The notes under the pieces: model-generated
The model's input: only the letters and a program-made list of their open reading frames with translations
The model's database searches: none
Told to the model about the DNA's origin: nothing
Origin: Macrostomum hystrix
Lineage: Eukaryota; Animalia; Platyhelminthes
Direction: 5' to 3'
NCBI GenBank assembly: GCA_950097015.1
Contig: CATNEN010000003.1
Span: 3,100,001 to 3,164,000 of the forward strand
Length of the DNA stretch: 64,000 bases
Shown here: positions 4,613 through 48,822 of the stretch, in pieces
How the letters are laid out: each line of letters opens with the position of its first letter
Numbering within the stretch: the first letter of the stretch is position 1
Program-made: the position numbers and the translations under genes

Positions 4613-4703
4613 AAAATTGCACGACAAGCCCCCAAGCCTTCTCTCCGAGGCTGCGCTGTAGGGACCTTGGTGCCAGAGTCAAACGCGTTAACCGCTTAGC
4701 CAT
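4613..4703 (-). mobile_element. tRNA-derived SINE family 2, 5' fragment
   Basis: Reverse complement TGGCTAAGCGGTTAACGCGTTTGACTCT...GGCTTGGGGGCTTGTCGTGCAATTT matches the copies at 9620 and 21290. Confidence 0.7.
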
Positions 4704-4725
4704 TATGACTAACAAAAACACTTAG

Positions 4726-6958: not shown

Positions 6959-7282
6959 CCCTAGCAACCATAGACGTTGATGTATTTAAGCCCTAGCAAC
7001 CATAGACTTTGCTGTATTTGAGCCCTAGCAACCAAGACATAGCTGTCTCTGAGCCCTATCGACCATAGACCCTGCTGTATTTGAGCCCTAGCAACCATAG
7101 ACTTTGCTGTATTTGAGCCCTAGCAACCATAGACCTGACTGTCTCTGAGCCCTAGCGACCTTAGATCTGACTGTTTCTGAGCCCTAGCAACAAATGACCT
7201 GACTGTCTCTGAGCCCTAGCGACCTTAGATCTGACTGTCTCTGAGCCCTAGCAACAAATGACCTGACCGTCTCTGAGCCCTA
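6959..7282. repeat. Minisatellite, about 32-bp unit (GAGCCCTAGCAACCATAGAC...)
   Basis: About 10 tandem copies between GST2 and GST3. Confidence 0.9.
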
Positions 7283-7735
7283 CTATTTGTAATTGATAAA
7301 CCTAGTATTGAATCTCGCAAAACTTGAGAGACTTATTATCCAAATTGCTGAATATTTCTATATTACTTAGCTATAGTCCAAGGAACTATGAACCTCCAAG
7401 TAAGCTTTTCGATTGAAGATTAGCTGTGTTAATTTTATTAGCCAACGTGTTTTTATCTAGCAGTCTGCAGTTTGTTGTATAGCGCAGTTGAATGTGTTTA
7501 TCAAAGGTGAACTGCGCGCTAATAGTGAGTCAACAATCACCTGGCACAGGTGGCGCGATTTTAACGACCTTTCCAGAAAATGCAACATTCTCTAAGCAAT
7601 CAGTGAACCACCACCTCAAGGCCATTAATTTCGATATAGAAACTGCTCGTTAGCGAAGTGTAGCAAAAACCTACAGCAAAGTGTTGTTACTGTTTGAAAA
7701 ATTTGTTACAGAGAAATAAAAACTCGAAACGAACA

Positions 7736-8374
7736 ATGTCGTCGCCGAAGTATGAATTAACCTACTTTCCGGCCAAAGGCAAGGGCAACCTTATTCGCCT
7801 GTTGCTAGTTGACCAGGCCATACCATACAAGTACACGGAGTATACCACTGAGTCCTGGCCGGCCGTCAAGTCCAAGTATCCGTTCAGACAGCTGCCAGTG
7901 TTGACGGTTGATGGCGCCCATGAGATTGCTCAGTCGCACACTATCGCTCGCTACTTGGCTCGTGAGCACGGCCTACTTGGCAGCAACAGTCTCGAGCAGG
8001 CCCAGGTGGAGATGTGGGTTGATCAGACACTGGATCTCCGCAACAGGCTAATGAATGTGCTGCACATTGACTATGAAAAGTTGATTCAACCCTTCTTGGA
8101 CTCTCTGCCTGGCCAGTTTGAGATCTTTGAGACCCGTCTGGCTGCTCAGCCTGCCTCGGCCAAGCACCTGGCCCTGGGTCAGCTGACCCTGGCTGACTAC
8201 GCACTGTTCGATGTACTCTTCTACCTGCAGCTGCTCAGACCGGGGTCGCTAGACAACACGCCAGTTTTGAAGGCCTTCTACACGGAGTTCGCCGCTAGAC
8301 CGAATCTGCGAGCCTACATGGAGACTGACGAGTTTAAGAAGATGCGAACCACTGGCTCTAAGCACCTGCCTTAG
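7736..8374 (+). CDS. Glutathione S-transferase, pi-like (copy 3), 212 aa, intronless CDS
   Basis: MSSPKYELTYFPAKGKG, PFRQLP, QSHTIARYL, TLADY motifs. ATG at 7736. Confidence 0.95.
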   Translation: MSSPKYELTYFPAKGKGNLIRLLLVDQAIPYKYTEYTTESWPAVKSKYPFRQLPVLTVDGAHEIAQSHTIARYLAREHGLLGSNSLEQAQVEMWVDQTLDLRNRLMNVLHIDYEKLIQPFLDSLPGQFEIFETRLAAQPASAKHLALGQLTLADYALFDVLFYLQLLRPGSLDNTPVLKAFYTEFAARPNLRAYMETDEFKKMRTTGSKHLP

Positions 8375-20957: not shown

Positions 20958-23900
20958 TCACAGATCCACCTTGGCCTCGCTGCCGTGAGTTTTGCGGAAG
21001 TATTCTTCCTTCTTCTCGGGATCCGGGATGATGGTGGCAGCGCCCGGGTGCCAGCCAGCGGGGCAGACCTCGCCGTGCTTGTCCGTGTACTGGAAGGCCT
21101 GCACAAGGCGAAGAGTTTCATCAACGGACCGACCAACTGGCAGGTCGTTCATGGTGATCTGGCGTAGTACGCCTTTGTCATCGATGATGAAGAGGCCGCG
21201 AAGACTGTGACCGGCCGACTCCAGATAAACGCCATAGTCTTTAGAGATCTGTAAATTTATAATTAAAAAAAATTTAAAATTTAAATTTCTCGCACCAAGT
21301 TCCATTAGCTCGATTCCACGGCGAGACCACATTTATTTGGGGCGCAGCCGCGGAGAGAAGGCTTGGGGGCTTGTTGCGCAATTTACGCCCTTGAGGGCCA
21401 ACCTCCAAGGCCCAGTGAGAGTGTACCAGCATTAAGCAAGGGTAAAAATTAGGGTAGCTATTTACGAAGAGCTTCTGAGGGCGTGTTGAAATAAACTAAC
21501 ACGTCTACTGATAGTAGTGGTTTAGAATGATTTAGATTAAAAATTGCAGTGTGGTGTTAGAGAAAAAAGTACCAACCTGGTGTGTCAAATCGGACAACAG
21601 CGGGATCTGCAGATCGCCAAGTCCGCCTTTGTTACGCGGGGTCTTCAGCCAAGCCAAATGGGTGAACGGGCTGTCCACTGAGGCGGCAACCACTTCGGTG
21701 TTGATCTTTCGGAAATCACCGATTCGATCGCTGAATGCAATGATTTCAGTCGGGCAGACAAAGGTGAAATCCAACGGATAGAAGAAAAAGACCAGATATT
21801 TGCCTTTGTAGTCGGACAATTTGATCTCCTTCATCTGGCGATTGATGACAGCTGTGCCACTGAAGGCTGGCGCTGGTTTGGAGACTACAAATATGAGGTG
21901 CCATTTTAATGTTTGAAAATGCCTGTCAAAATATAAAACTGCTCAAAAATATTTCTGCTTGGAACAAAAAAATAAATATTTCAATACAATCTAGGCCCCG
22001 AAGACTGACCTTGTCCTTTGTACACCATGCTGTGAATGAGTTCTAACTATAATTTATCAACAGTCAAAACTGACACCCCTCAAGTAATGTGGGTTACTGT
22101 CTGTTGCTGAGTATACCTATCTAAAAAATACAAATTAAAATAATGCTGATGAAAATTACTGATTGCTGATTAAACCTGTTGTACAACAATACCAGATTGG
22201 CATTAGACATACAGCTAGAGAGATTGAGCTAAAAGTATTTTTTTACATTCATGTTTCACAAACTGTTAGTACTTTTTTCAAAAAAAGAAAATACTTTCAA
22301 GGTAAAAAGAATTAGGTAATGAAGCTAACTATGCCCCTGTTCCAGATCTATAGATGTAGGAATTAAGAAAAATGTCTTTTAAATTAATATACAATTGTAT
22401 CTTTCCTATAGTGTAACAATTTAAATTGCATTGAAATATGAAAATTAGATAACGAACAACAATAACCATAAACAATTTTTAAATACACACATTAAGATGT
22501 CTGGGCTAGGCAAAGATAAGTAAAACTCAAACTCAGACTGTCCCTTGGTATCTAACACAAGCACACAAGGTGAAAGATACAGATACAATCAACTAAATTA
22601 GACAGCACTAGCCTTCTTTAAAAGATGAGAAAGTTTGACCTCTAAAAATAGCAGAGAAAATCAACACAAACTCATAATTTTTTTAATCAAATGTAGTAAG
22701 TGGCTCAGGCAACAGTCAGAAATACTAGAGGGACAGAAATATTTTAAGGTTTTGTATAATGTCATAAGTAGCAGAGCAGTGGATTTGAGCATCATAATTC
22801 TAAGCCACTGAGCTACTGAAAAACGGATCCTAGACACTTCGACATCTTACAACTTCGTCATCCACTTGGAAGGTAGGACACTTCGTCATCCAGCCAATTG
22901 GCATGCTTTAAAGTTTGGTCAGTTTGTCATCTACTAATAACAAGCAATCAAATTCATCATCAATAAAGTGAGGGTGGGGTGGTGGGGCAGAGGTGTGAAC
23001 ACACTTCACACTCTAAATTGTCAAAAAGAGGTGTCAAAACTGATTTCATTATAAGAGTTGAAAGATTGGTGCCAACACGAGGTGAGGAGGTGAGGAGGGG
23101 TGGTTCTATTCTAACTTTGAAAACTTTTGTTTTATAGATGACGAAGTGTCCACAAGTCTAAGTCTCTTCATCATCAACCCTCTGAGATATTGGACAGATC
23201 GTCATCTGGATGACGAAGTTCAGGGATGACCCTGAAAAACATCTAAATACTATTAAACTGGCCATTTATTGTAGAACAATATGTCAATAGGCAATTACAG
23301 AACAGAGTGTCCTCAAATTTGATAGCCAACCAACTAGATATTATGTTGCTATACATGCGCAACACCCGGCCAAACTGGCCAGGTGAAATGAGGGCCAAGC
23401 AAGGTAAGTAGCAAAAACCAATCAACCAAGTGCAAAAAATCAAAGGGGGGACCAAGGGACAAAAAAGGAAGGCGTGAAGAAGAGGAAAAAGGGGAGAGAA
23501 AAATAGAGCAAATGAGAGCAAACTAAGTCGTAAATAGAGCAAAAACTAAGTCACACGGCCAGCTAAGATTTGGGAGGTTGTACATGTATGTACATTGCTA
23601 TGTGTTTATAATATCTATCTAATGTATCCACTATCAATATAATATACCATTTTGTTCATAGTGGTAGTAGTAGTAGACTTGGCTCAGGCAAGAAGCCTGT
23701 TTTGGCAATATTGAGCAATGTTTAATAGGATGATTAAGATAAGTATTCAATAGTATATGCAATTATTGCAGTTCAAATTTCAAGTAATAAAAATGAAAAA
23801 AATTGAACATAGGCCTAAACATTAGAGTTAAAATGGAATGAATAATTCGATATTGTGAGTAAATAAAAATAAAGTCAATGGAATACAAGTTCACTGCTGG

Positions 23901-28700: not shown

Positions 28701-31700
28701 GCCTGTGCCGTCGGCTTTATCGCCGCACAGCGCCTTCATCAGCGCTAGCCTCCGACAGCAGCTCCAGCTCGATTCTGTCTCCGTCGATAATGCTGTTCGA
28801 CTGGGTGCCGACAGCAGCGACGAAGATGACGATATCGACGATGACGAAGATGACGACGAGGCGGCGGACGATGATGACGGCGAAGATGAAGCTGACAGCC
28901 GCGACGGACACGCTGATAACAATGAGCCGGACAATGGCTACTCGTTTACCAATAGCGGCGCCGCCTCACTCAAATATGGTGAATCTTGTTTTGGAGATCT
29001 TTGTTCTATATTCAAGTCAAAACCTTGTCATCCCGAAGCCCTATATCTTTTCTGAGGCCTAATATTCCCCAATTGCCCTCAATCCCTTCAGGCCCGTCAT
29101 CTCAATCCCTTCAGGCCTATCACATCAACTCCTTCAGGCCCATCACCTCAATTCCTTCATGCCCATCACATCAATTCCTTCAGGCCCATCACATCAATTC
29201 CTTCAGGCCCATCACTTTGATTCCTTCAAGCGCACATTAACTCAATTCCTTCAGGACCATTACCTCAATTTCTTCAGTCCTATCACCTCGATTCCTACAT
29301 TGCGTTTTGCCAAAACAATTCGTCTTCCAAAACTATCAGGCGACGTCAGCAGCTACGACGGCCGCAATCTAGCCGAACTGGAAGCCGCCTATGGTCACGT
29401 GATTGAGTTGGAAAGTGCTGGTGCTGCTGCTGCTGCTGCTTCGCTGAATTGCGGTTTGCCCTCGTTATCTCGCCAGACTGTATCATCGTCAACCTTCGGA
29501 CCAATCGCATCTTGGTCGTCGACTTCAGCATCTATGGGTCATTTGTCATTGAACTCATCGTATTCTACATCGTCAATTGAGCAGACAATGAAATCTGTGC
29601 GTCTATCTGCTACAGAAATATCCCTATTGTCTGTTTCTGCCAAGCCGTTGACTTCTAGAAGAAGATCTGGCAATAATTCCGCACAACAATTGTCAGATTA
29701 TTCTTCAGCTGACGCTGGCCAATCAGCACTGACCGAACGATACGTGCGTCTGAGCTCTCGCACAAAATCGGTGGCCAAATTTCACATTCTTGGCTATCCG
29801 GATCTAATAGGAGCCTGTTCACCGCCCTATAGGGAGGCTTTGACAGAGCGGAAGTCTGTCTGTACACAGGCACTGGTGCTGGACGATGCTAGAAGGTTAG
29901 TTTTCTTGTAAGGTTAAGAAAAAAACGAGAATTCTAGAGTTCTGGCCACCAGCCTAAAGGGGTAAAAAATTTGGTGGGTGTGGCGACACCTCCAGTCCAT
30001 GGACTGAACATGCTGATGCACGCACAGCTTTTGGCTTGTGAAAAAATTCTGTACACTGCTATGTTGCCAAAATATTATTGATCAATTCAAGATTCAAGGA
30101 AAAATTTTTGTTTGATTACACCTGCCCCAATTGGGCCAGACGTGCAGCCGACAGCACAGCCGCAGCTACGAGTATTGCGTGGCGCATCTGAAGGCTGCGT
30201 ACGGCTGTTCAGTCCATGGACTGCGGAGCGCGACAGCCACCCTTAATTAGCCCAGCAAATTCTGGCACCCATTTGAAATCTGGGTGAACTGAAGCAATGC
30301 AGAGTTAAGTGTCTTGCTAATGGACACGGAACTGTATCAGGGGAGTCGGGAATCGAACCCCCGACCTTCCAGTCGTGAGTACGAAGCTCTAGCCACTAGG
30401 CTACAACCCCATTTAGCTCAGAAAGTTTCAAGCTCAATTTATAATTGCATAACTGTCCATAAAAATTCCAAATCTAATGTACATCAAACCCTCTACCTTC
30501 TTCAGATGGATTGATCCTTCGGACATTATCGATCGTGTCGTTTACGATCTGGACGAACTAGTTTCCCGATCTCGTTCGCACGGTCGCATGGACGCCGCCA
30601 ATAGATTAGTGAACGACGATGAACTAGAATTGCAGCAACAGCAGCAACAACAGCAGCAGCAGCACTTGACTTTCGAATCTCGCTTTGAATCTGGCAATCT
30701 TCGTCGAGCTATTCAAGTGCGTCGACGAGAATACGATCTTCTCCTTAGTCCGGACATTGGGCATCGAGGTCACCTGCAGTGGTTCTACTTTCGCGTTGCC
30801 AACTGTGAATCCGGTGTGCCCTACAGGTTTAACATTGTCAACTGTGAAAAAGCTGGCTCCCAATTTAGCTGCGGTATGAGACCGCTACTATTCAGTGTTA
30901 AAGAGGCCATGCTAGGAAGGCCGTATTGGCTAAGAGCCGGCAAGGATGTCTGCTATTATCGCAATCAATATTTGCGTCCAAAGATATCTGGTCCTAGAAT
31001 GCCTTATTATACGGCTAGTTTTACTATTACATTTAAACACTCTGGTGACGTGTGCTATCTGGCCTACTATGTGCCGTACACCTACACTAGGCTATTAGCC
31101 GACTTGGAGGATTGGCAATCAGTTGCAGCCGCCAATACCAATGATTCTTCTGGTATAATATTCTCTCGTCATAGTTTGGGAGCGTCACTAGGCGGCAATC
31201 AGTTGCACGCTTTGACTGTCACAGCTGAGCCAATGGATTCTGCGCGACCAATTGTGCTAATTACTGGGCGAGTACACCCGGGCGAATCCAATGCCAGTTG
31301 GACTGTACGCGGTCTGGTCAATTATCTGCTCAGTCCGGCTGCCAGGTTGGTTTGACTGTTGGTTTGAAAATAGATGGATTGCCCATCTAACCACTAGGTG
31401 GGTTGTAGCCTAGTGGTTAGAGCGTTGGACTAACGACTTAAAGGTCGAGGGTTCGACTCCCGACTCCAACGGAACAATTTGTGTCCTTTAGCAAGACACT
31501 TAACTCTGGATTGATTCGGTTCACCAAACTGTTAAATGGGTATCAGCATCTGCTGGGGTATTTAAGTGTGGGTGTGGCGTCCCCCCCAGTCCATGGACTG
31601 AACAGCCGTACGCAGCCTTCAGATGCGCCTTAAAAATTATTAATAAGAATTTGTAATTTAACATTAACATGACTCACTCCATTAATATTGTCACAGACAA

Positions 31701-33435: not shown

Positions 33436-33832
33436 CCCACCTTACTCCCACCCACCTCACTCCACACCCACCTCACTCCGCTACCAACCTCACTCCACTA
33501 CCCACCTCACTGCACTACCCACCTCACTCCACTAACCACCTCACTTCACTACCCATTTCACTCCACTACCCACCTCACTCCACTACCCATTTCACTCCAC
33601 TATCCGCCTCACTCCACTACCCACCTCACTCCACTACCCACCTCACTCCACTACCCACCTCACTCCACTACCCACCTCACTTCACTACCCATTTCACTCC
33701 ACTATCCGCCTCACTCCACTACCCACCTCACTCCACTACCCACCTCACTCCACTACCCACCTCACTCAACTACCCACCTCACTCCACTACCCATGATTTC
33801 ACTCCACACCCACCTCACTCCGCTAACCCCCT
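33436..33832. repeat. Minisatellite, 17-bp unit (CCCACCTCACTCCACTA), downstream of the AGTPBP1 stop
   Basis: About 23 copies. Confidence 0.92.
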
Positions 33833-35228
33833 CAAAAATTATTTTTACCGACTAGCCAAATCATAGCTTGATGTTTGATTTTTAAAGTTCATGTCTTTTT
33901 TCAGTTTTTCTTCCCTTTTTCTCAATATGCGTTGTTACTGGTTGTGCAACTTGCATTTAGTTGCCATAACTCTGAGATTTTTGTTGTGCTGTTTTTCTCC
34001 TCTCTGGAATTTAAACTATTTTTCTGTCGTTCGTCCTGTTTTTTTTAGTGAGCTAGGTACAATTTTTATTGAGCTCTACTCATTTTTAGTTTGTTGTCTT
34101 TAGTGTGTATTTAGTACATAACTATAAGTATTTTTATATAAATAACATTGCCCTGTCCCTTTTATCAGCAAATCAGGTTACTTCTTTATAGATTTTTGTA
34201 CTTTGTGTTGTACTTTGCGTTGCTTGAAGCTCGCCTATATTATTAGCTGTTGTGTCCGCTTACTTGTGAATCTACAAGGACAAATTTGTTTTATTTCATG
34301 CTTTCATATTTTTATGCTGTCGAATTTTTGCTGTGTATATCAAGTGCTTCTCTATATTGTTCAATCATTTTATTAGACTTGAAATTATTTGTGCTGGCCT
34401 ACATGTATCGAAATTTTTTTTAATCCGCAGGAGTCAAACTAGCTAGACGATATGTATCGAAAAAGTGATATTTTTCTAAAATATAAAATTGATAAATTTC
34501 AAAATACACATTTTTGATACCGAAATTTCTTTATTTGTTAAAATGAAATATGAAACATACGGAAATAAGTTTTAAAGTGACTTTAAAAGTGATAATCTTG
34601 CAGTGAATTAAAATGTTAGGAATGAAAAAATTAAGTTTTTATGCCACAAAGTGCTACATTTTAATATAGATTTCATTACTGCATTTATTTTCTTTTATGT
34701 TGTGCCATTGTTGGGTCAAAATTTGTGTTTTAGGAGGCTATTTCTGTCGCTGGTTATTTCTTAAGGCCCAAGAAAATAATTGTATACTCCAACAATCTGC
34801 ATCACCACAATTTTCAAGCAGTTTAACAATAAATTGTATGCAATCAAGTTTTTACTTTTAGTACTTTATCTAGCTTTAAATTGCCTGTCACATACTAAAC
34901 TCTAACGTACTTGTATTAATAATTAAAATCGTTCTCTAATTACACTTAAGAAACATAGAATTTTTTATTTGACGTAGAAGATAGTTTGTACTATTCTGAA
35001 GAAGAAATTTTAATTCAATTTGATGTTTGTGTTCGGTCTAAATAAATACGTGCCTACAGGATAGAGCAAAAAGTATAAAAAATACTATCGTAATTAAAAC
35101 ACTAATTGGCATTCTGTTAATCGCCGCTTTTGGTGCGAAAAACGCATTATTTCTACTGTAAGTAGACGCACGTTTTTATCTAAAATTTAAATGTTTCGAA
35201 TATGTGCAAGCCAGCTAAATCAGCATAT

Positions 35229-35388
35229 AAAAGGTGGGATAGCGCTAAACGGTGTTTAGGACCTCCTGTTAAGGCGGTTTTGTTTTTTGTGCCAGAAACT
35301 GTCAACAATGACAGATTCCAGCAGTTTTTGTATTTTTTTGAAAAAATCCAGTATTTATCAAAGTAGCCGTTGTAAGCAGAGCCCACCC
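35229..35388 (-). ncRNA. Vault RNA-like gene A (160 nt; internal T6 run, possibly a pseudogene)
   Basis: 5' GGGTGGGCTCTGCTTACAACGGCTACTTTGA ... ACCGTTTAGCGCTATCCCACCTTTT 3'. GGTGGG/CCCACC stem. TATAAAT about 30 nt upstream with GTTTCGCA further up. Confidence 0.6.
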
Positions 35389-35944
35389 AGAGTCACGGTG
35401 TGGACAATCTCACATTTATAGCCTAATTCCGACAGTTGCGAAACTTTTATTTTAATTTTTTATAAAATTTAAGCAAAAAATATCGTGCACTACTTTTAGT
35501 AAAATACATGCGCCTAAATATTTTTAATACTGAGACAGATACACAAAAGTATTCTATAATAATATCTGTGACTTGCAATGCGAAGAACGTTGCTAAAATA
35601 AAAAATAAAAAAGAAATCTGAATTTGGTACAATTAGATAGAATTCGCCTGTACCAGTTGTATTGTCCGATATGTATCGAAAAGTTCAACTTAACCTCTAT
35701 TTTTTAAAGATTTTTTGTGTCCTTGCAGGACTAATAATAGTGCTAATTAGTTCATAACTTTCATTTGCCTACTTAAATTTCCAGAAATAACTTCTAGTAT
35801 TTATAAAATGCTTTAACCTGGTTATACGAAAAAGCTTGCATAAATGCGTTATGCTTACTGTAAGTAATGTGCTTGGTTGAAAAAGAGGTTTCGCATTCAG
35901 TACAGTCCTAAGTATAAATAAGAATTATTGCCTGCATATAATTT

Positions 35945-36049
35945 GGGCAGGCCAATGCATTTCGGATACTTTGAAGAAATCCTCTGACCGTCACTCAGAA
36001 AATGATACTTAATTGCATTATTTGACCGTAGGCGCAATCCTGCCTTTTT
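35945..36049 (+). ncRNA. Vault RNA-like gene B (105 nt)
   Basis: GGGCAGGCCAATGCATTTCGGATACTTTGA ... GACCGTAGGCGCAATCCTGCCTTTTT. TATAAATA at 35913-35920, GTTTCGCA at 35888-35895. Confidence 0.7.
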
Positions 36050-36439
36050 CGGTACAGTTTATTATGTCTCTGTTTTTACCTTATACAATACAATTTGTAA
36101 GCTTTTTAATCTGAATGATCTGAATTATAGCATCTGTGCCTTTAAACAAAGCTTGTATAGCCTATTTTTAAAAGCATATCATTATTTAGGCAATAGTTTT
36201 GAGTTTTGACCGATGGATTGCCTATTAGGCACCTTGAGCTAAAACCCGACATGTATCGAAAAAGTTTCAAACCAAGAGCGCTTTATAAACAGAAACAAAG
36301 CACGAAATAAATTACGAATATTTAAACTACTTTAAGTAGAAACAAAAGAGATATAGCTAGCTTTTCAGGCGAGTAGGTAAATAATTTCGCTATTTCTGGC
36401 CGCAAGTTTTAAAAATACATTTTATAGCTGCTTTTACCT

Positions 36440-36540
36440 GGGCAGGCTAAATGCTGCACGGTTACTTCGAAGAAATCGCCTGAGTTCCGTTCAGATAATG
36501 ATGCTTATCACTTTGACCGTTAGCGCAACCCTGCCTTTTT
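36440..36540 (+). ncRNA. Vault RNA-like gene C (101 nt)
   Basis: GGGCAGGCTAAATGCTGCACGGTTACTTCGA ... GACCGTTAGCGCAACCCTGCCTTTTT. CGGTTACTTCGA is identical to human vtRNA1-1 as recalled. TTTAAAAA about 30 nt upstream, TTTCGC at 36385-36390. Confidence 0.75.
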
Positions 36541-36707
36541 GTTGATTTTTAACATATTTTTTCGAAGTTACAGCACTCTGGAAAATTATATCAGTAAAAT
36601 ACATTTTTTCCTTTAAATGATGACAGCTTCTATAAACTTTATTCTTGCCGATATGTATAGAAAAACGTGTCAGCGGCAGATCAGACAGACACGGACAGAT
36701 CAGCCAG

Positions 36708-38506
36708 TCAGGCCAGCAGGCAGCGGTCCTGGAGCATCCGGAACTCCGACATCGTCAGTTCCCTGGCGCTGAGGCCATAGCAGCGCATTGTGCCATTCAG
36801 ACTATTGTTTGGAATTGTTGAGGAGCCGATGAACAGGCAATTAAAGTTATCAACTTTGGTGAATCCAGGATTATCCAAAATCTGATAACCGACGCCGACA
36901 ATTGTGCCATTGAGATAGAACGACTTCACGGAGCTGCCGCTGAAGATCAGTCCGACGTGCAGCCAGGCGTCAGCAGTGCCAACTGTTGGCAGAATATTTC
37001 TGCTCTCTGTGTACCTCTCATGAGCTGGAGCAGTCGGCACGCCGGAGGTCCATCTGGCAAAGTGATAGAACAGACTTGACGCTTTGGCCAGCGTGTTGCT
37101 GGTGGCGTTCGCGTTGAAGCAGCTGGCGAATTTGTGGTAGAATTGACAGCTAAATGGTTTGCGAGGAGGTCGGGGGTTCGATTCTTTTCGATAGAATAGA
37201 AATTTTACCTAACTAACTGTGAAGGAGAGTCTGTGGTAGACAGTGAAGGAGAGTCTGTGGTAGACAGTGAAGGAGAGTCTGTGGTAGACAGTGAAGGAGA
37301 GTCTTTAGTAGACAGTGATGTGGAGTCTGTAGTAGACAGTGATGGAGAGTCTGTGGTAGACAGTGATGGAGAGTCTGTAGTAGACAGTGATGTGGAGTCT
37401 GTGGTAGACAGTGATGGAGAGTCTGTGGTAGACAGTGATGAAGAGTCTGTGGCAGACTGACGGCAGACATCACTTGCCGTTTATCAAGTGAGTGTCGCAC
37501 AATGAGAAAGGCCGAGTATGATCGACCGTAATCCAAGCGTTTCTCAAAGCCAGGTGTCTCCGCCACCAGTTGAGAAGCTGTGAAGCCGCTAAATTTGGCT
37601 CCGTCGGATCCGATGTTAACCAGAATTCCATTGTTGACTAGGCAGGACCTTCTTGGCCCAGCTTCGTTGATTAGGCCGCTTTTGGCGAAGCGATAAAATA
37701 GCAGCATGTTCATCTGTGACAGCTGGCTATCCGGGCTGTCTGATGGAGTTAACAATTGTTTATTTGCGGGTACTTTTTGCCATTAAACACATGGGTTAGT
37801 TTGTCACTCTCGATATTAAGTTTTCACTCTATGCTGGACTTAGGTACGAGTACTGTAAATGTTACTTTGTCTTTCTAGGTGTTACTTTTTCAATCTAGGC
37901 GTTTCTCTGTCGCACTTACGGTTAATTTTTCACAATAAACGTAATTTTTCACTCAAAAAGTTACTTCGTCATTCATTCTAAAAGTTACTTTTCACAACAT
38001 ACGTTACCTTGTCACTCTAGATGTTTACCTAGTCACTCTAGACGGTACCTTGTCACTCTATTCTAATTTCACTCTACTCAAATTGTCACTCCGAGTTTAG
38101 CACTCCGCTCACCCGCTGAGTCATCAGCCGCACTGTACAGGTAGGCGTTGCAGTCCCATCCAGGCCAGGCCTTCGGGTCCTTCGCGCTGCACGAATCACC
38201 CAGAGAACAAAGACCTCCTGCTCCACCAGCTGCTCCAGAATTCTTCGCAATGTCCGTCCGCACATTGTTGGCAGAAAACCGGAAACCATTGCATCGAGCT
38301 CGTCTAGCACAGAGATCAGCGCAAGCTAGCTTATTTCTGACCGACACTAAATTGACACTTCCGGCTGACGTCGCAGGACAAATCCGCTGCTGAATAAACG
38401 TCGGATTAGTGAACAATGGGTTAGCAATTTGACAATGACCTAGCAGCCAGTACTGACAGAGAAGGTCAAGAATTACTGCAGAGACTACAGAGGAATTTAT
38501 TAACAT
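36708..38506 (-). CDS. Secreted protein with PAN/apple domain plus ConA-like/LamG (pentraxin-like) domain (exons about 38506-38113, 37739-37478, 37149-36708)
   Basis: Signal peptide, CADLCARRARCNGFRF...CSL (PAN), WLHVGLIF...FYLNG...LFIGS...LNGTM...REL (LamG_3-like). The second intron boundary is uncertain. Confidence 0.7.
37216..37458. repeat. Intronic minisatellite, 24-bp unit (GAGAGTCTGTGGTAGACAGTGATG)
   Basis: About 10 copies. Confidence 0.92.
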
Positions 38507-38896
38507 TTTAGCTATTGAAATACTTCGTATTTTCTATATGTCAGGATTTTAACACGTTTATATACACGCCTATAACAGATACTTCTAAAATCTTGACTGA
38601 AAAATCGTGATTCCTGATTTCTCTTGTTTTAAAATCGATTTGCGCTGTTTAAATTTGGACAATTAGCCAAAAAAGATGCCAATCAGTGTGATTTTAATTG
38701 CAAGTCGCTTAAATGATAGTTAATTGTTCACAGAGTGTTTACGTTAGACTAACAAAAGTTACAGCTTTTATGTTTCCCCATCAATCACTTTTGCCACAAT
38801 GGGAAGAGAAACAGATGCGAAACAAATATTAAGTCGAATAAACCATAGCTGACCAGAAGATGGTTCAGGAAACAGCAGCGTGATAGGATTGACAAG

Positions 38897-39618
38897 AGAG
38901 ATGCGACATAGGAGAGATGAGACACGGGAGGGATGAGACATGGGAGAGATGAGACACGGGAAAGACACGGGAGAGATGAGACACGGGAGAGATGAGACAC
39001 GGGAGAGATGAGACACGGGAGAGATGAGACACGGGAGAGATGAGACACGAGAGAGATGAGACACGAGAGAGATGAGACAGAGAATAGATAACAGGGGGAG
39101 ATGAGACACGGGAGAATTGAGACACGGAAGAATTGAGACATGAGAGAGATGAGAGACGAGAAAGATGAGACACGAGAGAGATAAGACAAGAGAGAGATGA
39201 GACAAAGAATAGATTACAGGGGGAGATGAGACACGGGAGAATTGAGACACGGAAGAATTGAGACATGAGAGAGATGAGAGACGAGAGAGATGAGACACGA
39301 GAGAGATGAGACAAGAGAGAGATGAGACAGAGAATAGATTACAGGGGGAGATGAGACACGGGAGAATTGAGACACGGAAGAATTGAGACATGAGAGAGAT
39401 GAGACACGAGAGAGATGAGACAAGAGAGAGATGAGACAGAGAATAGATTACAGGGGGAGATAAGACACGGAAGAATTGAGACAGAGAATAGATAACAGGG
39501 GGAGATGAGACACGGGAGAGATGAGACACGGGAGAGATGAGACACGGGAGAGATGAGACACGGGAGAGATGAGACACGAGAGAGATGAGACACGAGAGAG
39601 ATGAGATACTTGAGAGAT
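38897..39618. repeat. Minisatellite, 18-bp unit (GAGATGAGACACGGGAGA), same family as 55217-56040
   Basis: About 38 copies with higher-order blocks. Source of several spurious ORFs. Confidence 0.93.
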
Positions 39619-39817
39619 GAGTGCGTTAGGATGGCAATTCGCAATAAAACTTTGTTAAATTTCAATCGCCATTTTTCTAAATGTCTACTCTAAGTAGGTG
39701 AACTAGATAGTTCACTGTTTTATTTTTAATTTCTGCCGCAAAACTTTCACAATAGGCGCATGGGGCTGTATATTCAGCACTATCTTTATAAAGCCATTTA
39801 GCCATGCCATTAACACT

Positions 39818-39924
39818 GGGCAGGCAAAGCCAAGCGGTTACATCGATAATTAAATCATTGATTTCCAGACAAACATTCTGACAGAATCTGCCACACAGGT
39901 ACTGCTGGCGCAATCCTGTCTTTT
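39818..39924 (+). ncRNA. Vault RNA-like gene D (107 nt)
   Basis: GGGCAGGCAAAGCCAAGCGGTTACATCGA ... ACTGCTGGCGCAATCCTGTCTTTT. TATAAA at 39787-39792. Confidence 0.75.
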
Positions 39925-40656
39925 GTGATAGCAACTCAGTAGGTGCAATAATCAATACCAGATTTTATTTAGTGTTTCAAAGAATAAGACAAAATTGCAC
40001 GATCTAGTCGATATTTTAGTCTGCAGTCAAAGGGAATATTGCTTTTAGAGCAACTTTTTCGTCGTAGATTGACAGATTGACAGATATTAACATGAAAGAA
40101 TTGTTTTCTGCTATTGCACAGCTTTGAAACTTATCTAACGATTTCCTATACAAAAGTGGATTCATTTAGATATGTGTATCTTTATATAGAGCCGAGAGTT
40201 TAACAGTAGGAAGACCAACTAACATTTTCCGATTCTTGTCGAAGTGTCTGGTGTCAAAAGCCACCAATATTTCAGCATGAAAAATGTCGATTCATATTGT
40301 TATAATGTATTGATTATTTTGTTAATAGAACTTGTATTTATCTAATGAAACCAATATGGATTCGTCATACTAAGTTAGTTCATCGTAAAGGGCGGAAAAC
40401 TTTGATCAGATGGTGGAATTTCACGAAAATCGGTCATTCCGTTCGGGAGCTATCGTGAAGTAGGCAGGGAAATACCCACGTGGTTTTTCCCAGGTGAAAA
40501 AATAGCGTGATGTTTCTACTCTTATAAGTCCATCTAGTGCATTGTGAGGAATATTATAAGGTAAGTGGCCTTAACGCCAAAAAATGTCTATCAAATTTGA
40601 TTGACTAAAGCCATTGTGAGTCGTATTAATATAGAGTTGGTGTGGAGTTATCTGAT

Positions 40657-43287
40657 CTAGTTGATGGTCTCGCCAGTTCGGGTCGTACTGGACGTCTCCA
40701 CCAATGTCGTTCGGACAGTGGAAACGTTGTAGTTCTTGACCAGTTCGGCCCGGTCGAATACAACGGCGTAGACCTTGGGCAGGAACAGGATGCTCACTGC
40801 GAACAGGTTGGTGAAGAGCAGAACAAAGACCAGCAGAGCGGCGGCTGAGGTGAGCGAGGCCAGCGTGACGAGGCTGGGGATGAAGGCGATCCACACGAAG
40901 GTGGCGCAGGCGCTGAAGGCCAGGATGCACTTGCTGTCGTGGAAGTTGTCCGGCAGGCTGCGGATTCGCACTGCCAGCGAGCACGTGACCAGCATGAGCA
41001 GCAGGTTGAGCGCGTAGGGAATCCACTGGCTGCTGGAGAAGTAGTCGCACTGGAACTCCACGACTGGCCGGGTGTCGGAGCGGAGGCCGTTGAGCACGAG
41101 CTTCACGGGCCGGATCGGACGGACGATGAGGACGCTCGACAGCAGCACCACCTGAGGGAAGAAATCACAGGTCATTTATAGCGATTGCTCAAAATCCATT
41201 GATCAAAATCAGCGTGACGAACCTGCAGCAGACAGAGCGTCACCGTCATGACGACCACGGCTCGGCGACCCGTGAACTTGAGCGACGATGCGCCTCGCAT
41301 CGATCCGGAGAACACGCGGTAGATGCGAGCGCTCTTTGTGAGCAGAGCCGCGTACACCATGGTCAGGCTGAAGTGGTACAGGAATGCCTGCACGTTGCAC
41401 ACGGTGAGGGAGGGCTCACCGAAGAACAGCGCCACATCGACCAGTCCGAGCTGGATGCCCACCTGCTGGAAGAGGCTCAGCTCGAGCGAGGACGCCTTCA
41501 GCAGCGGCACGCTCGACCTGGCGAGAAAGAACACGCCCGTCGCAATGGTGATGGCGGAGCCGAGCGACGCGACGCTGATGAACACGATGCCGCTCGTGTC
41601 GCTTGGTCGGAGAACGGTCAGGTCGAGCGGTGAGCAGCGCGAATAGTTTGAGCTCGGCCAGGTGAGTGAGGCGCACTTCTCGCACTGGGTGCCGTTCGAC
41701 CCGACGATCTCGTCCGAGCTGCAAGGCCTGCACACCCAGCAGCACTTGCTCACCTGAACTCGGTACTCGTGACTGCCGCACGGCAGAGAGCACACACTCA
41801 TTGGCACCTGCTGCTGGTCGCTCGCCACACTTCCCGGCCACGAGATCAGACTGCGGTTCAAGCTGAGACCGAGCTCAGAGCTCCACACTCCGACAGTGAG
41901 GCTCGAGCTCACCTGCTGACTGCTCTGGTACAGCACCACATACGAGGCCGGACCGTTTCCGCCGCTGTCCAGCTTCACCTGTCCAGTGTAGCCGGTGAAG
42001 TTCGTCCTGTACAGCTGCTTCAGCAGCAGCGGTCCGGTCACGCACTGGAGCAGCGACGACTTGTTGAGCTCGGGCTCCAGACGAGCCGCACTCGGACCTG
42101 GCCACCGCGTCGATGGCGTGAGCGAACGCGAGAAACGCGTCCAGCATCCGTGCCACCGGAGCCACGATGCTGGCCGGCCTGAAGCTGGTCGACTCGGACA
42201 GCCGACGGGTCGAGTTCGCGAAGCAGCAGGCGCAGGCCGAGCAGTTCATCAGCTGGTCGAACATGAGCGCTCCGTTGTACATCGGCGAGAGGTCGGCGTA
42301 GGTGAGGTTCCGGTACCATTCGATCAGGTCTTGCGTAGGGAACAGCTTGAAGTAAATCGTGAAGGTGGAGTTGGTAAAAACATTTTTATTGTAGTTTCCG
42401 TCACTCGTCACAATCGTCACTCCCGTTCTTCCGACCGCCTCTAGCAGGCGAGTTGTTTGCAACTGACCATCGATGTCCTTCAGCCAGATAAGAGCTCTCA
42501 TATTGGGCTGCTGGTTGATTGCGTCTATGACATCGGCTTGTTCTGTCGCGCTGGTGTGCGGAATGATGAAGGCCAGGCAAGCCTGCGGAAATCTAGAAGG
42601 CAGACTGGACGTCAGCTGCAGAGCAATGTTCGTGTTGTACGCACTTCCAGGGTTGTACAGGAGGCCAATGTAGGTCCAGTTGAACTCTTTGAGCAGATCG
42701 ATCATGACCATAGCCTGGTATGAGTCCGGACTCACAAGCCGTACAAAGTTTGGATACCGAACTCGATTACTGAGGGCGTCGCTGCTGCACTCGGTTCCGA
42801 TCGAAGGCAGCTGATCGTTCTGCAGTATGGACATCATGACTTGGGTCACGGTGCTAGACCAGCCGCCCACTACGCCGTGAACCATGTAGACAGGTTCGGT
42901 GTCAATGCCGTTTAGGTAGTTGCACCTGCGGTCAGGTGGTAGCAGGGCAGGGCGACTCCAAGCAGCTCGAACCCTACTGGCACCATCTGCGCCCAGCGCC
43001 TCCAGGTAGCAGGTCTCATGAAACACGACGCCAATTGTGACATTCGCCCGGCTAAATATCGTTCCTGGCAAGCGGGCGTTGATCGTCTGTCGGATGTAGT
43101 ACGGCACGATACGACGCAAAAACTGCGTCTCTTCTAGAGCGGTGTTGCAGTATCGCGTGTCGTGCAGCAGTGCCAGCATGAAGTCGCCAGACAGGCAGAA
43201 GCCATCTGTCTCGGAGCTGCCTGACGGAGTTGTCGCCAGGAGGATGGAAACCAACGATACTAGAGTCCTGCTGGTAGCTCGAAGCAT
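40657..43287 (-). CDS. Class C GPCR, metabotropic glutamate receptor-like (exons 43287-41223 and 41151-40657), with an apparent one-base frameshift near 42081
   Basis: Signal peptide, Venus flytrap (GVVGGWSS, LSNRVRYPNFVRLVSPDSYQA, FNWTY), nine-Cys domain (SVCSLPC...CCWVC..C), 7TM (LLTKSARIYRVF, PDNFHDSK, FLPKVY). 71-bp intron 41152-41222. Confidence 0.88.
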
Positions 43288-44754
43288 TCTGAAGTGCCAA
43301 TTCCAGTTGAATGTTTTTAAACCATCGGGTTTTATAAGCGAAACAACTCATTTAAGACCTTCTTTGTAATCTTCAACAATGCATGTTAGTGTCAGACTCA
43401 ATCAAAAGACATTTCAAAGCCTCAATTGCTATTTTCTAGTTATTTTCCGGTCATAAATTTTGCAGCCAAAATCCATGCTTCAGTAATAGGCCAACACAGA
43501 ACTTCGCTGAGGCACCGCTATAAGTTGCCACTGCTAAGGGCCTTGAAGCAGTGTCTCATATTTCAAGCATGTCATATTTCTCTTGACTGTCTTTTATAAC
43601 AGACACTCAACTTAAGCCAACCCAATCGGTGGGCTTAATAATGGGCGTGGCAAGAATTGAACATAAAAAATTGCTTTGACTGACAACCTAAACCTGTTTC
43701 AAAGCAGGAAACTTAACTGTGTGCCCCACACTCAGTCAAGATCAGAAAGTTTAATCTCAGTTGATACCAATTTAGCAAGTTTTGAGCTACTAAAACTTTT
43801 AGTCTCTCATGATAATAAGTAATGAAATGCTTCCTAGTTTAATTCTGCTTACCGGTACATGTAGAACAGTGCAGCAGAACAATGATTTCTGCTTTAGTTT
43901 GTTTTGTCTTTACATTGAGGTTTTTTTGGTGGCAGTTTGAAGACTATGCAGATTTGTTAGCTCAGTCATCTGGCTGCAGAGCCTATACGTCTTGGCAAAT
44001 CTGTGATTGGTTAAGAAGCAAGAATTCCAATATTTGATCGCCAATGCAAAGTGTATTGTCTTTCTTTAGGCTCCTGAATTAGGAACGAATTGGAAATGGA
44101 ATAAAATTACTCTCTGTAACGGTATGCACTTTTAGAACCACTGTACAGAAACACTTTTAGGAAAACATTGTCTTCGTTTTCATTTATTCAACAATAATTA
44201 CCGTTTAATCACAAACACATAGACTAACAAGATGACGAGTCAATTGACTTCACTAATAAATACATAGCTACTCGTGCCGTTTACCGATTGTGCAATCATT
44301 AATAAGCAGTCACTGTTCTAAATCTGTTGTCGGCTAGAATAGATAAAAAACGACTATTAAGTATTTTTCGGCAGACAATTGTTGGCTTTTAAAAGAAGAT
44401 GAAACATATCTGTTCTTATAAAGCATGCACCCTGTCTCGAGCTGCAGGAGTGTGAATTTGAGTGCAAACAGTGAACGCTCAAATTGTTCTTCAAACGCTG
44501 AGTGGTCCAACAAGTTTAGCACATCATAGACTGCATTTTAGAATTGAGTGTATCTTAAATACACAACTCGGACTCACACAGTTTATAATATTAGCATTAC
44601 AATCATTGCTTCACTAACTTTTTACATCGTCAACGATTACTTTTCTTTTCTACTTTAAGTAGACTATAAAAACATGCGAATTAAAATTAAATAAAACACC
44701 CTACATGTTGCAGCTGCGCGAAATTAAATAGGCGCTTCAGCAGCTCTGCTGGCC

Positions 44755-44862
44755 GAGTAGGCAAATGCTAAGCGGATACTTCGCAATCTCAAACCGATTA
44801 CCAGACTGTCCTTCTGTTCAAATCGAACTCTTCGAAAGCCGCCGGCGCTATCCTACTCTTTT
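44755..44862 (+). ncRNA. Vault RNA-like gene E (108 nt)
   Basis: GAGTAGGCAAATGCTAAGCGGATACTTCGC ... TTCGAAAGCCGCCGGCGCTATCCTACTCTTTT. GAGTAGG/CCTACTC stem. B-box-like TTCGAAAGCC. ATTAAATA about 30 nt upstream. Confidence 0.78.
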
Positions 44863-45190
44863 CTGAGTTGGTGGCAACTCAGTTTATTTCGGGTTAATGT
44901 TGAGTAATTACTTTATTATCGTTGAATTATGATCGTCAAATTTATATTAACCGTTTTGAATTTTAACTAATTAAAATCATCATGCTGATTTTCCGTGCTA
45001 GAATCGAGACAACGAAGCCTTAAGTGCTTACCCGACATGTTGCGAAAAATATAAAGTGCCAACTCATTTTTCACTCTAAAGACAAATCATGAAATTATAA
45101 ATTTTCATCAATCTGAAAGTACTGCGCTATTTTTGTTATGTAAAAACCCTTTGAAAGTTTCGTTTTGTATAAAATGTTTGTTTTCTTTTG

Positions 45191-45226
45191 AACTCTTTCA
45201 ACCCGCTGGCGCTATACTATTCTTTT
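45191..45226 (+). pseudogene. 3' half of a vault RNA-like gene inside a roughly 360-bp tandem duplication of the gene E locus
   Basis: ACTCTTTCAACCCGCTGGCGCTATACTATTCTTTT plus downstream flank similar to 44827-45150. No 5' half. Confidence 0.6.
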
Positions 45227-46767
45227 CTGAGTCGGTGGGAACAGTCAAAATATTATTTTGGCTCGTGTTGTGTAACTATTTTTTTGTTGTAGTTTTATAC
45301 TTTTCGACTTCAGGTTTTGAATTTTGCTTTTTTATTTAAAGCGTGCTAATTTCCTATTTTAATATCATGATAAATATGCATTACATGTTTAACCCGATAT
45401 GTTGCGAAAAATATAAAACATAAGTATACAAAGGTTTTAGTAGTATAATACGAAGAAGCAAACTATCTTTCACGAAAAAGACACAAATAGTGAAATTATA
45501 AATACACGTCATTCTAAAAGTACTTCTGATGTGCTATTTTTCAGATGTAAAAAACTTTTGCGTTAAAATCTAACTTTTTGTTTTTGTTTTATGTAAAAAA
45601 ACTTCAATTTTCAATTTCAATAAGTAGTATGTAAGGGATCTATCGATCAAAGAAAAAAAGCGAAAAATACAAACATTTAGTTGAAATCCGATATTTTTTA
45701 TTCTACTAACGTGTCAACCAAAAATCAAATTGCATTACTGAGGCCGACAACGAGTTTAGTTTTATATGTATATTTTATTGCATTGTGGCCAATTGAAAAA
45801 ATAAATATGCTAGAGATTGAATAGTTAGTTTCGTTTTGCACTTGATTTGTTATACTAGCTTGTTGCACAGTTGAACAGATAAAAATATAAAAAATGTTGA
45901 GATAGAAAATCAGACGATAATAAATATTCGAGAGCGAATAGGCTAGAGAAGCATTTTCAATACAAACGCAAAAAATCAAGTGAACAATGGAAACTGCATA
46001 TATTGATTGATTGATTGATTGATCGAAGGCATGGAGGAGTTGGTTGTTTGGAGTTGTTATCTCGAGTCAAAATTGAAATTTTCAAATCGAGCCAATTACC
46101 ACACTACCCGAATGACTAGTAGAATTAAATGACAGAAAAAACACTGGTTGCTAGGGGTGCCTTAATTTAAATCGTTACTTTAGGTTTCTTTAGTGAGTGA
46201 GCAACGAAAACAGGCCAATAGAAGCTATAGCAGAGAGTTAGCAAAAAGCAAAAGCAGTGTGGGGCATGCAGTAGATATCTTTCTTAATAAAAATGAGATT
46301 TTCAGTTTGTTCCACGCCAAATGTTAAACAGCATATTACTATTAGTAATAAATATTATGCGAACTATTACTACTATTAGTATATATACACATCCACATGA
46401 TAAAAAACACGAATCGTGCAATTCTACAATAATATTTGGTAGAGAAAATCAACAACAAACAGAAAGAGATATATATATGCATGTGCTACTGTGAAACTAC
46501 CAATATATACTTTATGAATAGTATATACGGTGCGTGTGTAACAACATAGAAACTAGAGAGGTGAACAGATATAAAAACTGACTATTTTATTTGTTAAAAT
46601 ATGACATGCGTTAAAAGACTTGTGAATTGTTACCGTATTTTAATAACAATGATTGAGATCGAATCAGGGATTCTGTACACACGACACACACTAGCACGGG
46701 TTTCACATGCTAAAACCGTTTTTAATACAGATGCCTGCTTAAAACTGGTATTGAAATTTCTATATAT

Positions 46768-47415
46768 TATTGAGCTGTGCTCAAATGTGGCATTGAACTG
46801 TGCTCAAATATGTGGCATTGAACTGTGCTCAAATATGTGGCATTGAACTGTGCTCAAATATGTGGCATTGAACTATGCTCAAATATGTGGCATTGAACTG
46901 TGCTCAAATATGGCATTGAGCTGTGCTCAAATATGTGGCATTGGGCTGTGCTCAAATATGTGGCATTGAGCTGTGCTCAAATATGTGGCATTGAACTGTG
47001 CTCAAATATGTGGCATTGACCTGTGCTCAAATATGTGGCATTGAGCTGTGCTCAAATATGTGGCATTGAGCTGTGCTCAAATATGGCATTGACCTGTGCT
47101 CAAATATGTGGCATTGAGCTGTGCTCAAATATGTGGCATTGAGCTGTGCTCAAATATGGCATTGACCTGTGCTCAAATATGGCATTGAGCTGTGCTCAAA
47201 TATGTGGCATTGAGCTGTGCTCAAATATGTGGCATTGAGCTGTGCTCAAATATGGCATTGGGATGTGCTCAAATGTAGCATTGAGTTGAGCTCAAATACG
47301 GCATTGAGCTGTTCTCAAATGTGGCATTGAGTTGAGCTCAAATACGGTATTGAGCTGTTCTCAAATGTGGCATTGAGTTGAGCTCAAATATGGTATTGAG
47401 CTGTGCTCAAATATG
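46768..47415. repeat. Minisatellite, 25-bp unit with internal palindrome (GGCATTGAGCTGTGCTCAAATATGT)
   Basis: About 26 copies. TTGAGC/GCTCAA hairpin in most units. Confidence 0.92.
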
Positions 47416-47977
47416 ACACTGGGTCAGAGCTACTAGATGAGCACATGATAATGAGCACACTAGTGAAGTTTTCAAGCAAGCATCCCATTTTAAAATAGAA
47501 TCTTGGCTATCGGTTTTTTGTTCTTTTACAATAGATAGGAAATCAAAAATGATAAAACAACATCAACAACAACAACAACAACAAGAATAGTACAACAAGA
47601 GATCAACGGGTTGCGAAATTGATTCATCTGAGCACATAATTACAAACGCAGCTTATAACGCATATAGATATATGGCAAAAATACTGTTACTAAATAACTA
47701 ACTACAGATATGAGTTAAATAACAACAACAATTATGTACTTTTAATTTTAATAACTAGAGCAACGTGATAATAACAATAATACCGAAGGCGAAAATAATG
47801 AGGGGCCGTAGTAGATTAGGCCACAGACAAATTGGCTATCCAAATGATGCAGAAAAATTGTAATCGTTTGCCATTAGGTATATTAATAATCACATGTGTA
47901 TCAGCAGCATCAGCAGCAGCAGCAGCAGTGAAAATACAGTTCCAATCTTGACAGCATTTTAGACTGAGTTAGATAAG

Positions 47978-48822
47978 TGACTTGTCTATAACAGATTAGT
48001 GATCGATCTAACAGATTAATGACCTGTCTAAGATATTAATGATTTGTCTAACAGATTAATGACCTGTCTAACAGATTCGTGATTTGTCTAACAGATTCGT
48101 GATTTGTCTAACATATTCGTGATTTGTCTAACATATTCGTGATTTTTCTAACAGATTAATGGTTTGTCTAACAGATTAATGATTTGTCTAACAGATTAAT
48201 GACCTGTCTAACAGATTCGTGATTTTTCTAACAGATTCGTGATTTTTCTAACAGATTAATGGTTTGTCTAACAGATTAATGATTTGTCTAACAGATTAAT
48301 GACCTGTCTAACAGATTCGTGATTTGTCTAACAGATTCGTGATTTGTCTAACAGATTCGTGATTTGTCTAACATATTCGTGATTTGTCTAACATATTCGT
48401 GATTTTTCTAACAGATTCGTGATTTGTCTAACAGATTAGTGATTTGTCTAACAGATTCGTGATTTGTCTAACATATTCGTGATTTGTCTAACATATTCGT
48501 GATTTGTCTAACAGGTGAGTGATTTGTCTTACAGATTAGTGATTTGTCTAACAGGTGAGTGATTTGTCTTACAGATTAGTGATTTGTCTAACATATTCGT
48601 GATTTTTCTAACAGATTCGTGATTTGTCCAACAGATTAGTGATTTGTCTAACAGATTCGTGATTTGTCTAACATATTCGTGATTTGTCTAACATATTCGT
48701 GATTTGTCTAACAGGTGAGTGATTTGTCTTACAGATTAGTGATTTGTCTAACAGGTGAGTGATTTGTCTTACAGATTAGTGATTTGTCTAACATATTCGT
48801 GATTTGCCTAACAGGTGAGTGA
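47978..48822. repeat. Minisatellite, 20-bp unit (GATTTGTCTAACAGATTCGT), downstream of the AGAP stop
   Basis: About 42 copies. Confidence 0.93.

Follow-up and report, generated by a model that had tools for sequence, protein, structure and literature searches.

Vault RNAs (vtRNAs) are short RNAs carried in cellular vault particles. Homologues were cited in two lophotrochozoan lineages by Copeland et al. 2009 (PMC2770079), who found none in Schistosoma. Fontenla et al. 2022 (PMC8824774) pointed out that vtRNAs of the flatworm Macrostomum lignano were already listed in Rfam, extended their comparison to sequences of M. lignano, Lottia and Helobdella, and described five expressed vtRNAs of Fasciola hepatica, one of which is enriched in extracellular vesicles and four of which lie in a stretch of 133 kb. 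The locus described here lies in a stretch of 64,000 nucleotides of the Macrostomum hystrix genome (positions 3100001-3164000 of contig C3 in a 220-Mb, 42-contig assembly), hereafter called the window. Five units in it, A to E, had been proposed to be vault RNA-like genes transcribed by RNA polymerase III (Pol III), and the original prediction regarded such genes as previously unannotated in flatworms. This claim of novelty fails because lophotrochozoan homologues (PMC2770079) as well as the vtRNAs of M. lignano in Rfam and the five of Fasciola (PMC8824774) had already been reported. The region is most probably (about 85%) a locally duplicated vtRNA gene cluster in a Macrostomum flatworm. A clustered multi-gene vtRNA family in this genus is expected given the published flatworm vtRNAs and is not a first for flatworms or protostomes; the present units are predicted vault RNA genes of an already known kind, new only as members.

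The M. lignano vtRNAs listed in Rfam belong to the same family as the present units by covariance model, and their host belongs to the same genus. Like them and the vault family at large, the units measure about 100 nt, end in a T-run terminator and have a variable centre enclosed by conserved 5′ and 3′ blocks that form the panhandle. The species analysed here is, however, another Macrostomum, the major vault protein MVP being only 90-95% identical. The F. hepatica genes vtRNA1-5 are likewise multi-copy and clustered in a flatworm (four of the five in 133 kb, as compared with six units in about 77 kb here), they have a weak B-box, and the sequences in Table S9 of PMC8824774 carry the same GGTTACTTCG and GGCAATCC..TTT blocks as the present units. 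The 5′ terminal sequences differ (GTCGGGCC against GGGCAGGC), and expression and vesicle enrichment were seen in Fasciola, whereas the present units are predicted from sequence. Vertebrate vtRNAs (human VTRNA1-1/2/3 and VTRNA2-1; rat) also form small local clusters that arose by lineage-specific duplication, and their panhandle fold recurs here, as does, by prediction, the logic of their hybrid Pol III promoter, in which an upstream TATA-like box is combined with internal A and B boxes. Unlike in vertebrates, most window units have a degenerate B-box next to the 3′ strand, the palindrome CTACT..AGTAG that lies upstream is a motif of the present genome, and there is no protocadherin linkage, the neighbours being genes for a CCP1-like carboxypeptidase, a class-C G protein-coupled receptor (GPCR) and an AGAP-type ArfGAP. 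The original prediction had noted this missing linkage, and no cadherin domain was found among the 27 long open reading frames scanned in the window. Protocadherin linkage is a lineage-specific trait and does not define the vault RNA family.

Vault RNA units in the window and across the genome

The whole window was scanned against all 4227 Rfam families, and a permissive scan (E<=10) was confined to the region at 30-50 kb. Three matches exceeded the gathering score in the whole-window scan, each of them to Vault RNA (RF00006; gathering score 34 bits). They correspond to units E, D and C, and each spans model positions 1-99 (Table 1). Unit B fell short of the gathering score, and unit A gave no RF00006 match at E<=10 in the scan of 30-50 kb. 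The five units were found at the coordinates and on the strands originally assigned to them, every one begins with G and terminates in a run of T4-5, and the strings quoted for unit C (CGGTTACTTCGA) and unit E (GCTAAGCGGATACTTCG and TTCGAAAGCCGCCGGCGCTATCC) are present. Units B to E are 101-108 nt long and the paralogues F to I, found elsewhere in the genome, 111-130 nt, all inside the range of about 80-150 nt of vault RNAs; unit A (160 nt) and a copy on contig C37 (156 nt) are longer. Identification as a vault RNA gene finds support in C, D and E, is probable in B and is doubtful in A.

Alignment A2, made of eight good units with A left out, was used to build a covariance model of the panhandle (R1). 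Across the whole genome, R1 recovered the eight training copies and one extra, the copy on C37. In the window, scanned with filters off, it detected unit A, which was not part of the training set, and the next-best window match reached 13.5 bits. The score of unit B was 83.7 bits, but B belonged to the training set. R1 separates members (38-96 bits) from background (<14 bits) far better than RF00006 does. Because the genome-wide R1 scan scores the best candidates only, a cross-check was run with the exact pattern CGGNTACWTYG..GCGCNAYCY. It gave 15 matches genome-wide, nine of which are known units and six of which are GC-rich and coding-like, while the reversed control gave 12. Since both the R1 scan and the two-block pattern give few copies, the family is estimated at about ten members genome-wide. 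Beyond unit F, which lies on the same contig as the window, it includes four further paralogues on three other contigs (G, H, I and the C37 copy). A search with RF00006 and a model built from the copies themselves had both been suggested in the original prediction; the outcome was Vault matches for E, D and C above the threshold and for B below it, and a family that takes in unit A.

Identity between copies is 39-73%, with subgroups formed by B and C (72%), D, E and F (57-73%) and G, H and I (57-69%). Units B and C lie in tandem, 495 bp from each other, and D is 73% identical to F, located about 72 kb away. A 3′ fragment of a duplicated unit E, made up of its 3′ end and adjoining downstream flank, follows that gene, and a repeat search found that the flank duplication beside it continues at 45030/45392 and 45082/45483; the fragment itself had no model match in the R1 scan of the window even with filters off. 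The cluster is best read as a product of local tandem DNA duplication in which the flanks were included. Four genes in the window appear intact (B, C, D and E), A is a decayed copy, and a 3′ fragment completes the set. Of the proposed count of at least five genes, four good units remain, and A is probably a pseudogene because its internal T6 should end Pol III transcription early. Similarly, the proposed span of the cluster (35229-45226) has the unit coordinates right, and its end at 45226 falls within the 3′ fragment.

Table 1. Coordinates of the vtRNA units, their upstream motifs, related elements and neighbouring genes. Positions are those of the window unless a contig (C) or locus (L) is named; RF00006 E values are from the whole-window scan unless stated; MFE, minimum free energy.
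Feature	Position	Strand	Remarks
Unit A, diverged 160-nt vtRNA paralogue, probable pseudogene	35229..35388	-	R1 38 bits (E 1e-6); internal T6
Unit B, 105-nt vtRNA-like gene	35945..36049	+	RF00006 27.9 bits (E 0.02, 20-kb search at 30-50 kb), under Rfam threshold; ends T5
Unit C, 101-nt vtRNA gene	36440..36540	+	RF00006 36.9 bits (E 1.8e-4); MFE fold is the panhandle
Unit D, 108-nt vtRNA gene	39818..39925	+	RF00006 44.1 bits (E 1.6e-6); ends T4
Unit E, 108-nt vtRNA gene	44755..44862	+	RF00006 51.4 bits (E 1.3e-8), top Rfam match of the window
3′ fragment of duplicated unit E	45200..45242	+	5′ half missing; 86% identity to 44836-44878
Unit F	C3:3212080-3212190		about 48 kb past window end, same contig; RF00006 55.9 bits
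Unit G	C39:6896976-6897102	-	RF00006 50.0 bits
Unit H	C33:3636923		RF00006 49.3 bits
Unit I	C33:3637598		RF00006 46.2 bits
C37 copy, 156 nt	C37:2935688		R1 52.6 bits; RF00006 30.8 bits
tRNA-like core of H	C33:3636950-3637017 (L004:1528-1595)	+	RF00005 47.8 bits
tRNA-like core of I	C33:3637625-3637693 (L005:1528-1596)	+	RF00005 40.3 bits
Upstream palindrome of unit A, TTACTAAAAGTAG	35490..35502	-	at -114
Upstream palindrome of unit B, TTACTGTAAGTAA	35855..35867	+	at -90
Upstream palindrome of unit C, CTACTTTAAGTAG	36327..36339	+	at -113
Upstream palindrome of unit D, CTACTCTAAGTAG	39685..39697	+	at -133
Upstream palindrome of unit E, CTACTTTAAGTAG	44650..44662	+	at -105
Orphan palindrome copy, no unit downstream	35153..35165	+	repeat family D8, homologous to upstream region of B
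CTACTNWNAGTAG sites	21505-21517, 35153-35165, 36327-36339, 39685-39697, 44650-44662, 59315-59327
CGAYATGTATCGAAA sites	34399-34413, 34448-34462, 35667-35681, 36247-36261, 36649-36663, 45033-45047, 45395-45409	+
Dispersed element, about 126 nt	21300-21426	-	at least 40 copies, 92-96% identity
tRNA-like element	31399-31468	+	tRNA model 23.6 bits
tRNA-like element	L007:1501-1594	+	weak Vault match, about 23 bits
tRNA-like element	L008:1501-1594	-	weak Vault match, about 23 bits
Short-period tandem arrays	33500-33856, 37168-37503, 38844-39717, ~46900-48700		periods 17, 24, 16 nt and about 100 nt
CCP1-like carboxypeptidase	27-32 kb		flanks the vtRNA cluster
Class-C GPCR	40.6-43.3 kb	-	between D and E
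AGAP-type ArfGAP	49.8-52 kb
Three tandem glutathione S-transferase genes	3502-8374	+	apparently single-exon each

Predicted panhandle fold and putative promoter layout

Mean pairwise identity in A2 was 71% in the 5′ block and 75% in the 3′ block, against 33% in the centre, which bears out the description of the units as having conserved ends around variable middles. RNAalifold was applied to a second alignment (A1, nine units) and joined the two blocks, unprompted, through a 7-bp terminal helix and a 10-bp inner helix. Pair-preserving double changes occur in 8 of the 17 panhandle pairs of A1, a comparison made among paralogues from a single genome. The terminal stem is found as GGGCAGG/CCUGCC, GAGUAGG/CCUACUC, GGGUGGG/CCCACC or GGGCUAG/CUAGCC, and the second of these, the stem of unit E, represents compensatory changes relative to the first. 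Standard pairs filled 89.5% of the cells, as compared with 33-51% when the 3′ partner was slid by 1-3 columns, and none of 500 column shuffles matched the observed covariation score or the number of doubly-changed pairs. The MFE fold was the panhandle in all eight good units. Because the compared units are paralogues of one genome, the covariation speaks for selection after duplication and not for conservation between species; taken in that sense, the compensatory changes show that the predicted fold was under selection once the genes had been duplicated. The Rfam matches and the covariation showed that the units belong to the Rfam Vault family and that their 5′ and 3′ ends are predicted to pair as the family panhandle. 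With three units passing the RF00006 gathering score and a panhandle that covaries, the assignment to vault RNA-family genes of probable Pol III type is supported.

Upstream positions were counted from the first G of each of ten units, which are distributed over four contigs. A TATA-like hexamer is located at -29 to -33 in nine of them and at -19 in unit C, TTTCGC, TTTCAC or TGTCGC is found at -55 to -73 in eight, and the palindrome CTACT(N3-6)AGTAG or a one-off variant lies at -90 to -133 in nine. The flanks around these elements are otherwise unrelated between the four contigs. Within the units, the A-box consensus is matched at 7-10 of 11 positions by the conserved GC..AGCGGTTAC block, and each unit closes with a T4-5 run at its 3′ terminus. 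Vilalta et al. reportedly described, in 1994, a hybrid external-plus-internal promoter for the vault RNA gene of the rat. The present layout fits a hybrid promoter of this kind, with external and internal elements, and from it we infer dependence on Pol III.

The palindrome was also looked for outside the vtRNA genes. In the window, CTACTNWNAGTAG occurs at six sites when 0.04 would be expected, and genome-wide TCTACTNWNAGTAGA occurs at 428 sites, as compared with eight for the reversed control. At 15 sampled sites the flanks were not shared, no known RNA gene was adjacent, and a tRNA was found within 1.5 kb at one only. A general role as a distal element of type-3 Pol III promoters was considered and rejected: the palindrome is missing upstream of four U6 genes, which carry a different upstream motif of their own. 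Because of the 428 sites, the unshared flanks and the U6 genes that do without it, the palindrome is regarded as a widespread, discrete, putative cis-motif that is specific neither to vtRNA genes nor to Pol III. An orphan copy lies to the left of unit A, and no R1 match followed it on the + strand in the window scan with filters off. Another motif was observed at the locus, CGAYATGTATCGAAA, a near-palindrome of the form CGATA..TATCG. Its seven window sites, when 0.23 would be expected, are all on the + strand and all inside the vtRNA cluster, and the motif is also present about 180 nt downstream of the C37 paralogue (- strand; L030 about 1310-1330).

tRNA-like cores and alternative readings

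The inner parts of units H and I scored above the gathering score of the tRNA model (RF00005; 29 bits). Both cores, enclosed by the vault panhandle, are complete cloverleaves in which no non-standard pairs were flagged: the acceptor stem has 5 bp, and D, anticodon and T arms are all present, the anticodon loop of H reading CUUUUAA. ARAGORN, run independently in its relaxed mode, called a tRNA-like structure from unit position 26 onwards in each of G (Pro-cgg), H (Lys-ttt) and I (Leu-caa), and made no call in A to F or in the C37 copy. The window units gave no tRNA match at the RF00005 gathering score, their similarity to tRNA being undetectable, and their centres retain hairpins only. The MFE fold of unit F has three hairpins in the centre, one with a 7-nt UUUGCAU loop. 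For human vtRNAs, a "tRNA-like acceptor stem fold" and cleavage by ELAC1 have been described (2026 preprint, PMC13692180). A limited full-text literature search turned up no vtRNA reported to enclose an entire cloverleaf, which does not prove novelty. It is conceivable, if rather doubtful, that the family keeps a graded series leading from the complete tRNA-like cloverleaf in the panhandles of G, H and I to hairpin remnants in the short window units.

Two kinds of dispersed elements were also observed in this genome. One is about 126 nt long and present in at least 40 copies (791 candidates) that are 92-96% identical and spread over many contigs, and it has no Rfam match at E<=1. A CTACT..AGTAG palindrome and a TATA-like box lie about 95 nt upstream of its window copy. 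The element may represent a short interspersed nuclear element (SINE) or a multi-copy small-RNA gene. The other kind comprises three tRNA-like elements, one in the window and two elsewhere (L007 and L008), which have in common the ACGACTT anticodon-loop region. They seem to form a repeat family of tRNA origin that is not related to the vtRNAs.

That the units themselves are mobile, as tRNA- or vault-derived copies of a SINE or of a miniature inverted-repeat transposable element (MITE), would agree with their spread over four contigs, with the A- and B-box-like sequences inside them, with the tRNA-like core of three paralogues and with the presence of tRNA-like dispersed elements such as L007 and L008 in the same genome. 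The 126-nt element served as a positive control for what such a family looks like here. Instead of its copy number and near-identity, or of the hundreds of dispersed copies named in the original prediction as a sign of a SINE or MITE, two independent searches found about ten copies in 220 Mb, which are 39-73% identical. The copies end in T runs and have no A-rich tail, the locus grew by tandem duplication of DNA with its flanks, and the promoter elements upstream are conserved in position, although retroposition would leave them behind. Because of the low copy number and the conserved upstream elements (TATA-like, TTTCGC-type and palindrome), the units are not considered a SINE; with the divergence and the T-run ends added, the mobile-element reading is largely refuted and extremely improbable. 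Y RNAs, which would be bound by Ro60 and not by TEP1 in vaults, resemble the units in size, Pol III-type T-run ends and a panhandle with paired ends and a variable centre, and they too have a partner with a TROVE domain, the RNA-binding module common to Ro60 and TEP1. The genome does encode Ro60, with its TROVE and vWA domains. However, when all Rfam families were applied to 30-50 kb in the permissive scan (E<=10), four units matched Vault and none of the matches was to a Y RNA. The conserved blocks (GGTTACTTCG; GGCGC.ATCC) are those of the Vault consensus and recur in the published Fasciola vtRNAs. For want of any Rfam support in that scan, Y RNA genes were rejected as an identification, and we consider them very unlikely.

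The vault RNA reading could still apply to the family while the window copies were decaying relics, with only the long paralogues G, H and I expressed. Several observations count against the window units as genes. The B-box is matched at 7-8 of 11 positions in them and at all 11 in G, H and I; unit A carries its T6 at +43..+48; unit B is under the Rfam threshold and has mismatches that break pairs of the inner helix; fold z-scores are modest (-0.5 to -2.5, with B at -0.5); and the covariation signal derives wholly from paralogues of one genome. The E fragment and the orphan palindrome show, in addition, ongoing decay at the locus. Against decay of the whole cluster, the full panhandle has been preserved by compensatory changes in units C, D and E, implying selection at the RNA level after duplication; these three units retain the TATA-like box near -30 and the upstream elements, and E and D match RF00006 as well as the long copies do. 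Even in unit A the upstream elements look intact (palindrome at -114, TTTCGC at -55 and TATAAA at -32). Relics throughout are judged very unlikely.

In the preferred reading, a locally duplicated cluster of vtRNA genes, each unit would be transcribed by Pol III from a hybrid promoter. The internal A-box would lie within the conserved GC..AGCGGTTAC block, and the window units, because the B-box is weak there, probably rely on the external TATA-like box and the other upstream elements. Transcription would stop at the T run. The resulting RNA of about 100 nt would fold into the panhandle, be bound by the TROVE module of TEP1 and reside in vault particles built of MVP, and the variable centre would let the paralogues diverge.

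Vault proteins, neighbouring genes and significance

Of the two vault proteins named in the original prediction, MVP and TEP1, the genome encodes the first and a TEP1-like counterpart of the second. MVP repeats are found at two loci (C37:4.18 Mb and C38:2.82 Mb), and a long MVP exon finds full-length MVPs at E 1e-253. The nearest named MVPs are those of M. lignano (90% and 95% identity), followed by those of molluscs, nemerteans and others (up to 78%), and the ArfGAP exon of the window finds M. lignano proteins at 86-92% identity. Because the MVP and ArfGAP exons are closest to M. lignano proteins, the host is placed in Macrostomum, in agreement with the flatworm-like genome that had been proposed. 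There are two TROVE loci. The one at C38:33.57 Mb is Ro60, with a Ro60-type vWA domain (210 bits). The other, at C33:3.756 Mb, has a TROVE match of 173 bits, weak DUF5920 and DUF4062 matches and a P-loop exon, a domain make-up as expected of TEP1, and the gene is classed as TEP1-like on that basis. A genome-wide search found no copy of the TEP1_N repeat of vertebrates, a result that does not weigh against this gene. The TEP1-like gene, within C33:3750000-3759999, shares its contig with units H and I at a distance of about 119 kb.

The intergenic DNA around the vtRNA units is AT-rich (GC 0.31-0.33). The exon of the class-C GPCR found no homologue at E<=1e-20 in a length-limited search that carries little weight. 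Farther left in the window, like the glutathione S-transferase genes, are genes for a Pex2/12 RING protein and an amino-acid transporter. Short-period tandem arrays interleave with the vtRNA units, and the one at ~46900-48700 gave spurious weak matches to microRNA families.

To our knowledge, vault biology has not been studied in Macrostomum, which is a model of regeneration and ageing. The present analysis adds to this free-living flatworm genus a well-resolved vtRNA family of about ten members, together with its promoter layout and with support from covariation. In practice it is of use for annotation and as a seed from which lophotrochozoan vtRNA models can be improved. For the origin of vault RNAs, the tRNA-like cores seen in three paralogues are relevant. 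If the graded series reflects ancestry, it would provide direct sequence evidence that vault RNAs descend from a stem-embedded tRNA gene. Alternatively, the nested tRNA-like module may be a working part of some vtRNAs, for example as a Pol III promoter or as a handle for enzymes of the RNase P/Z type.

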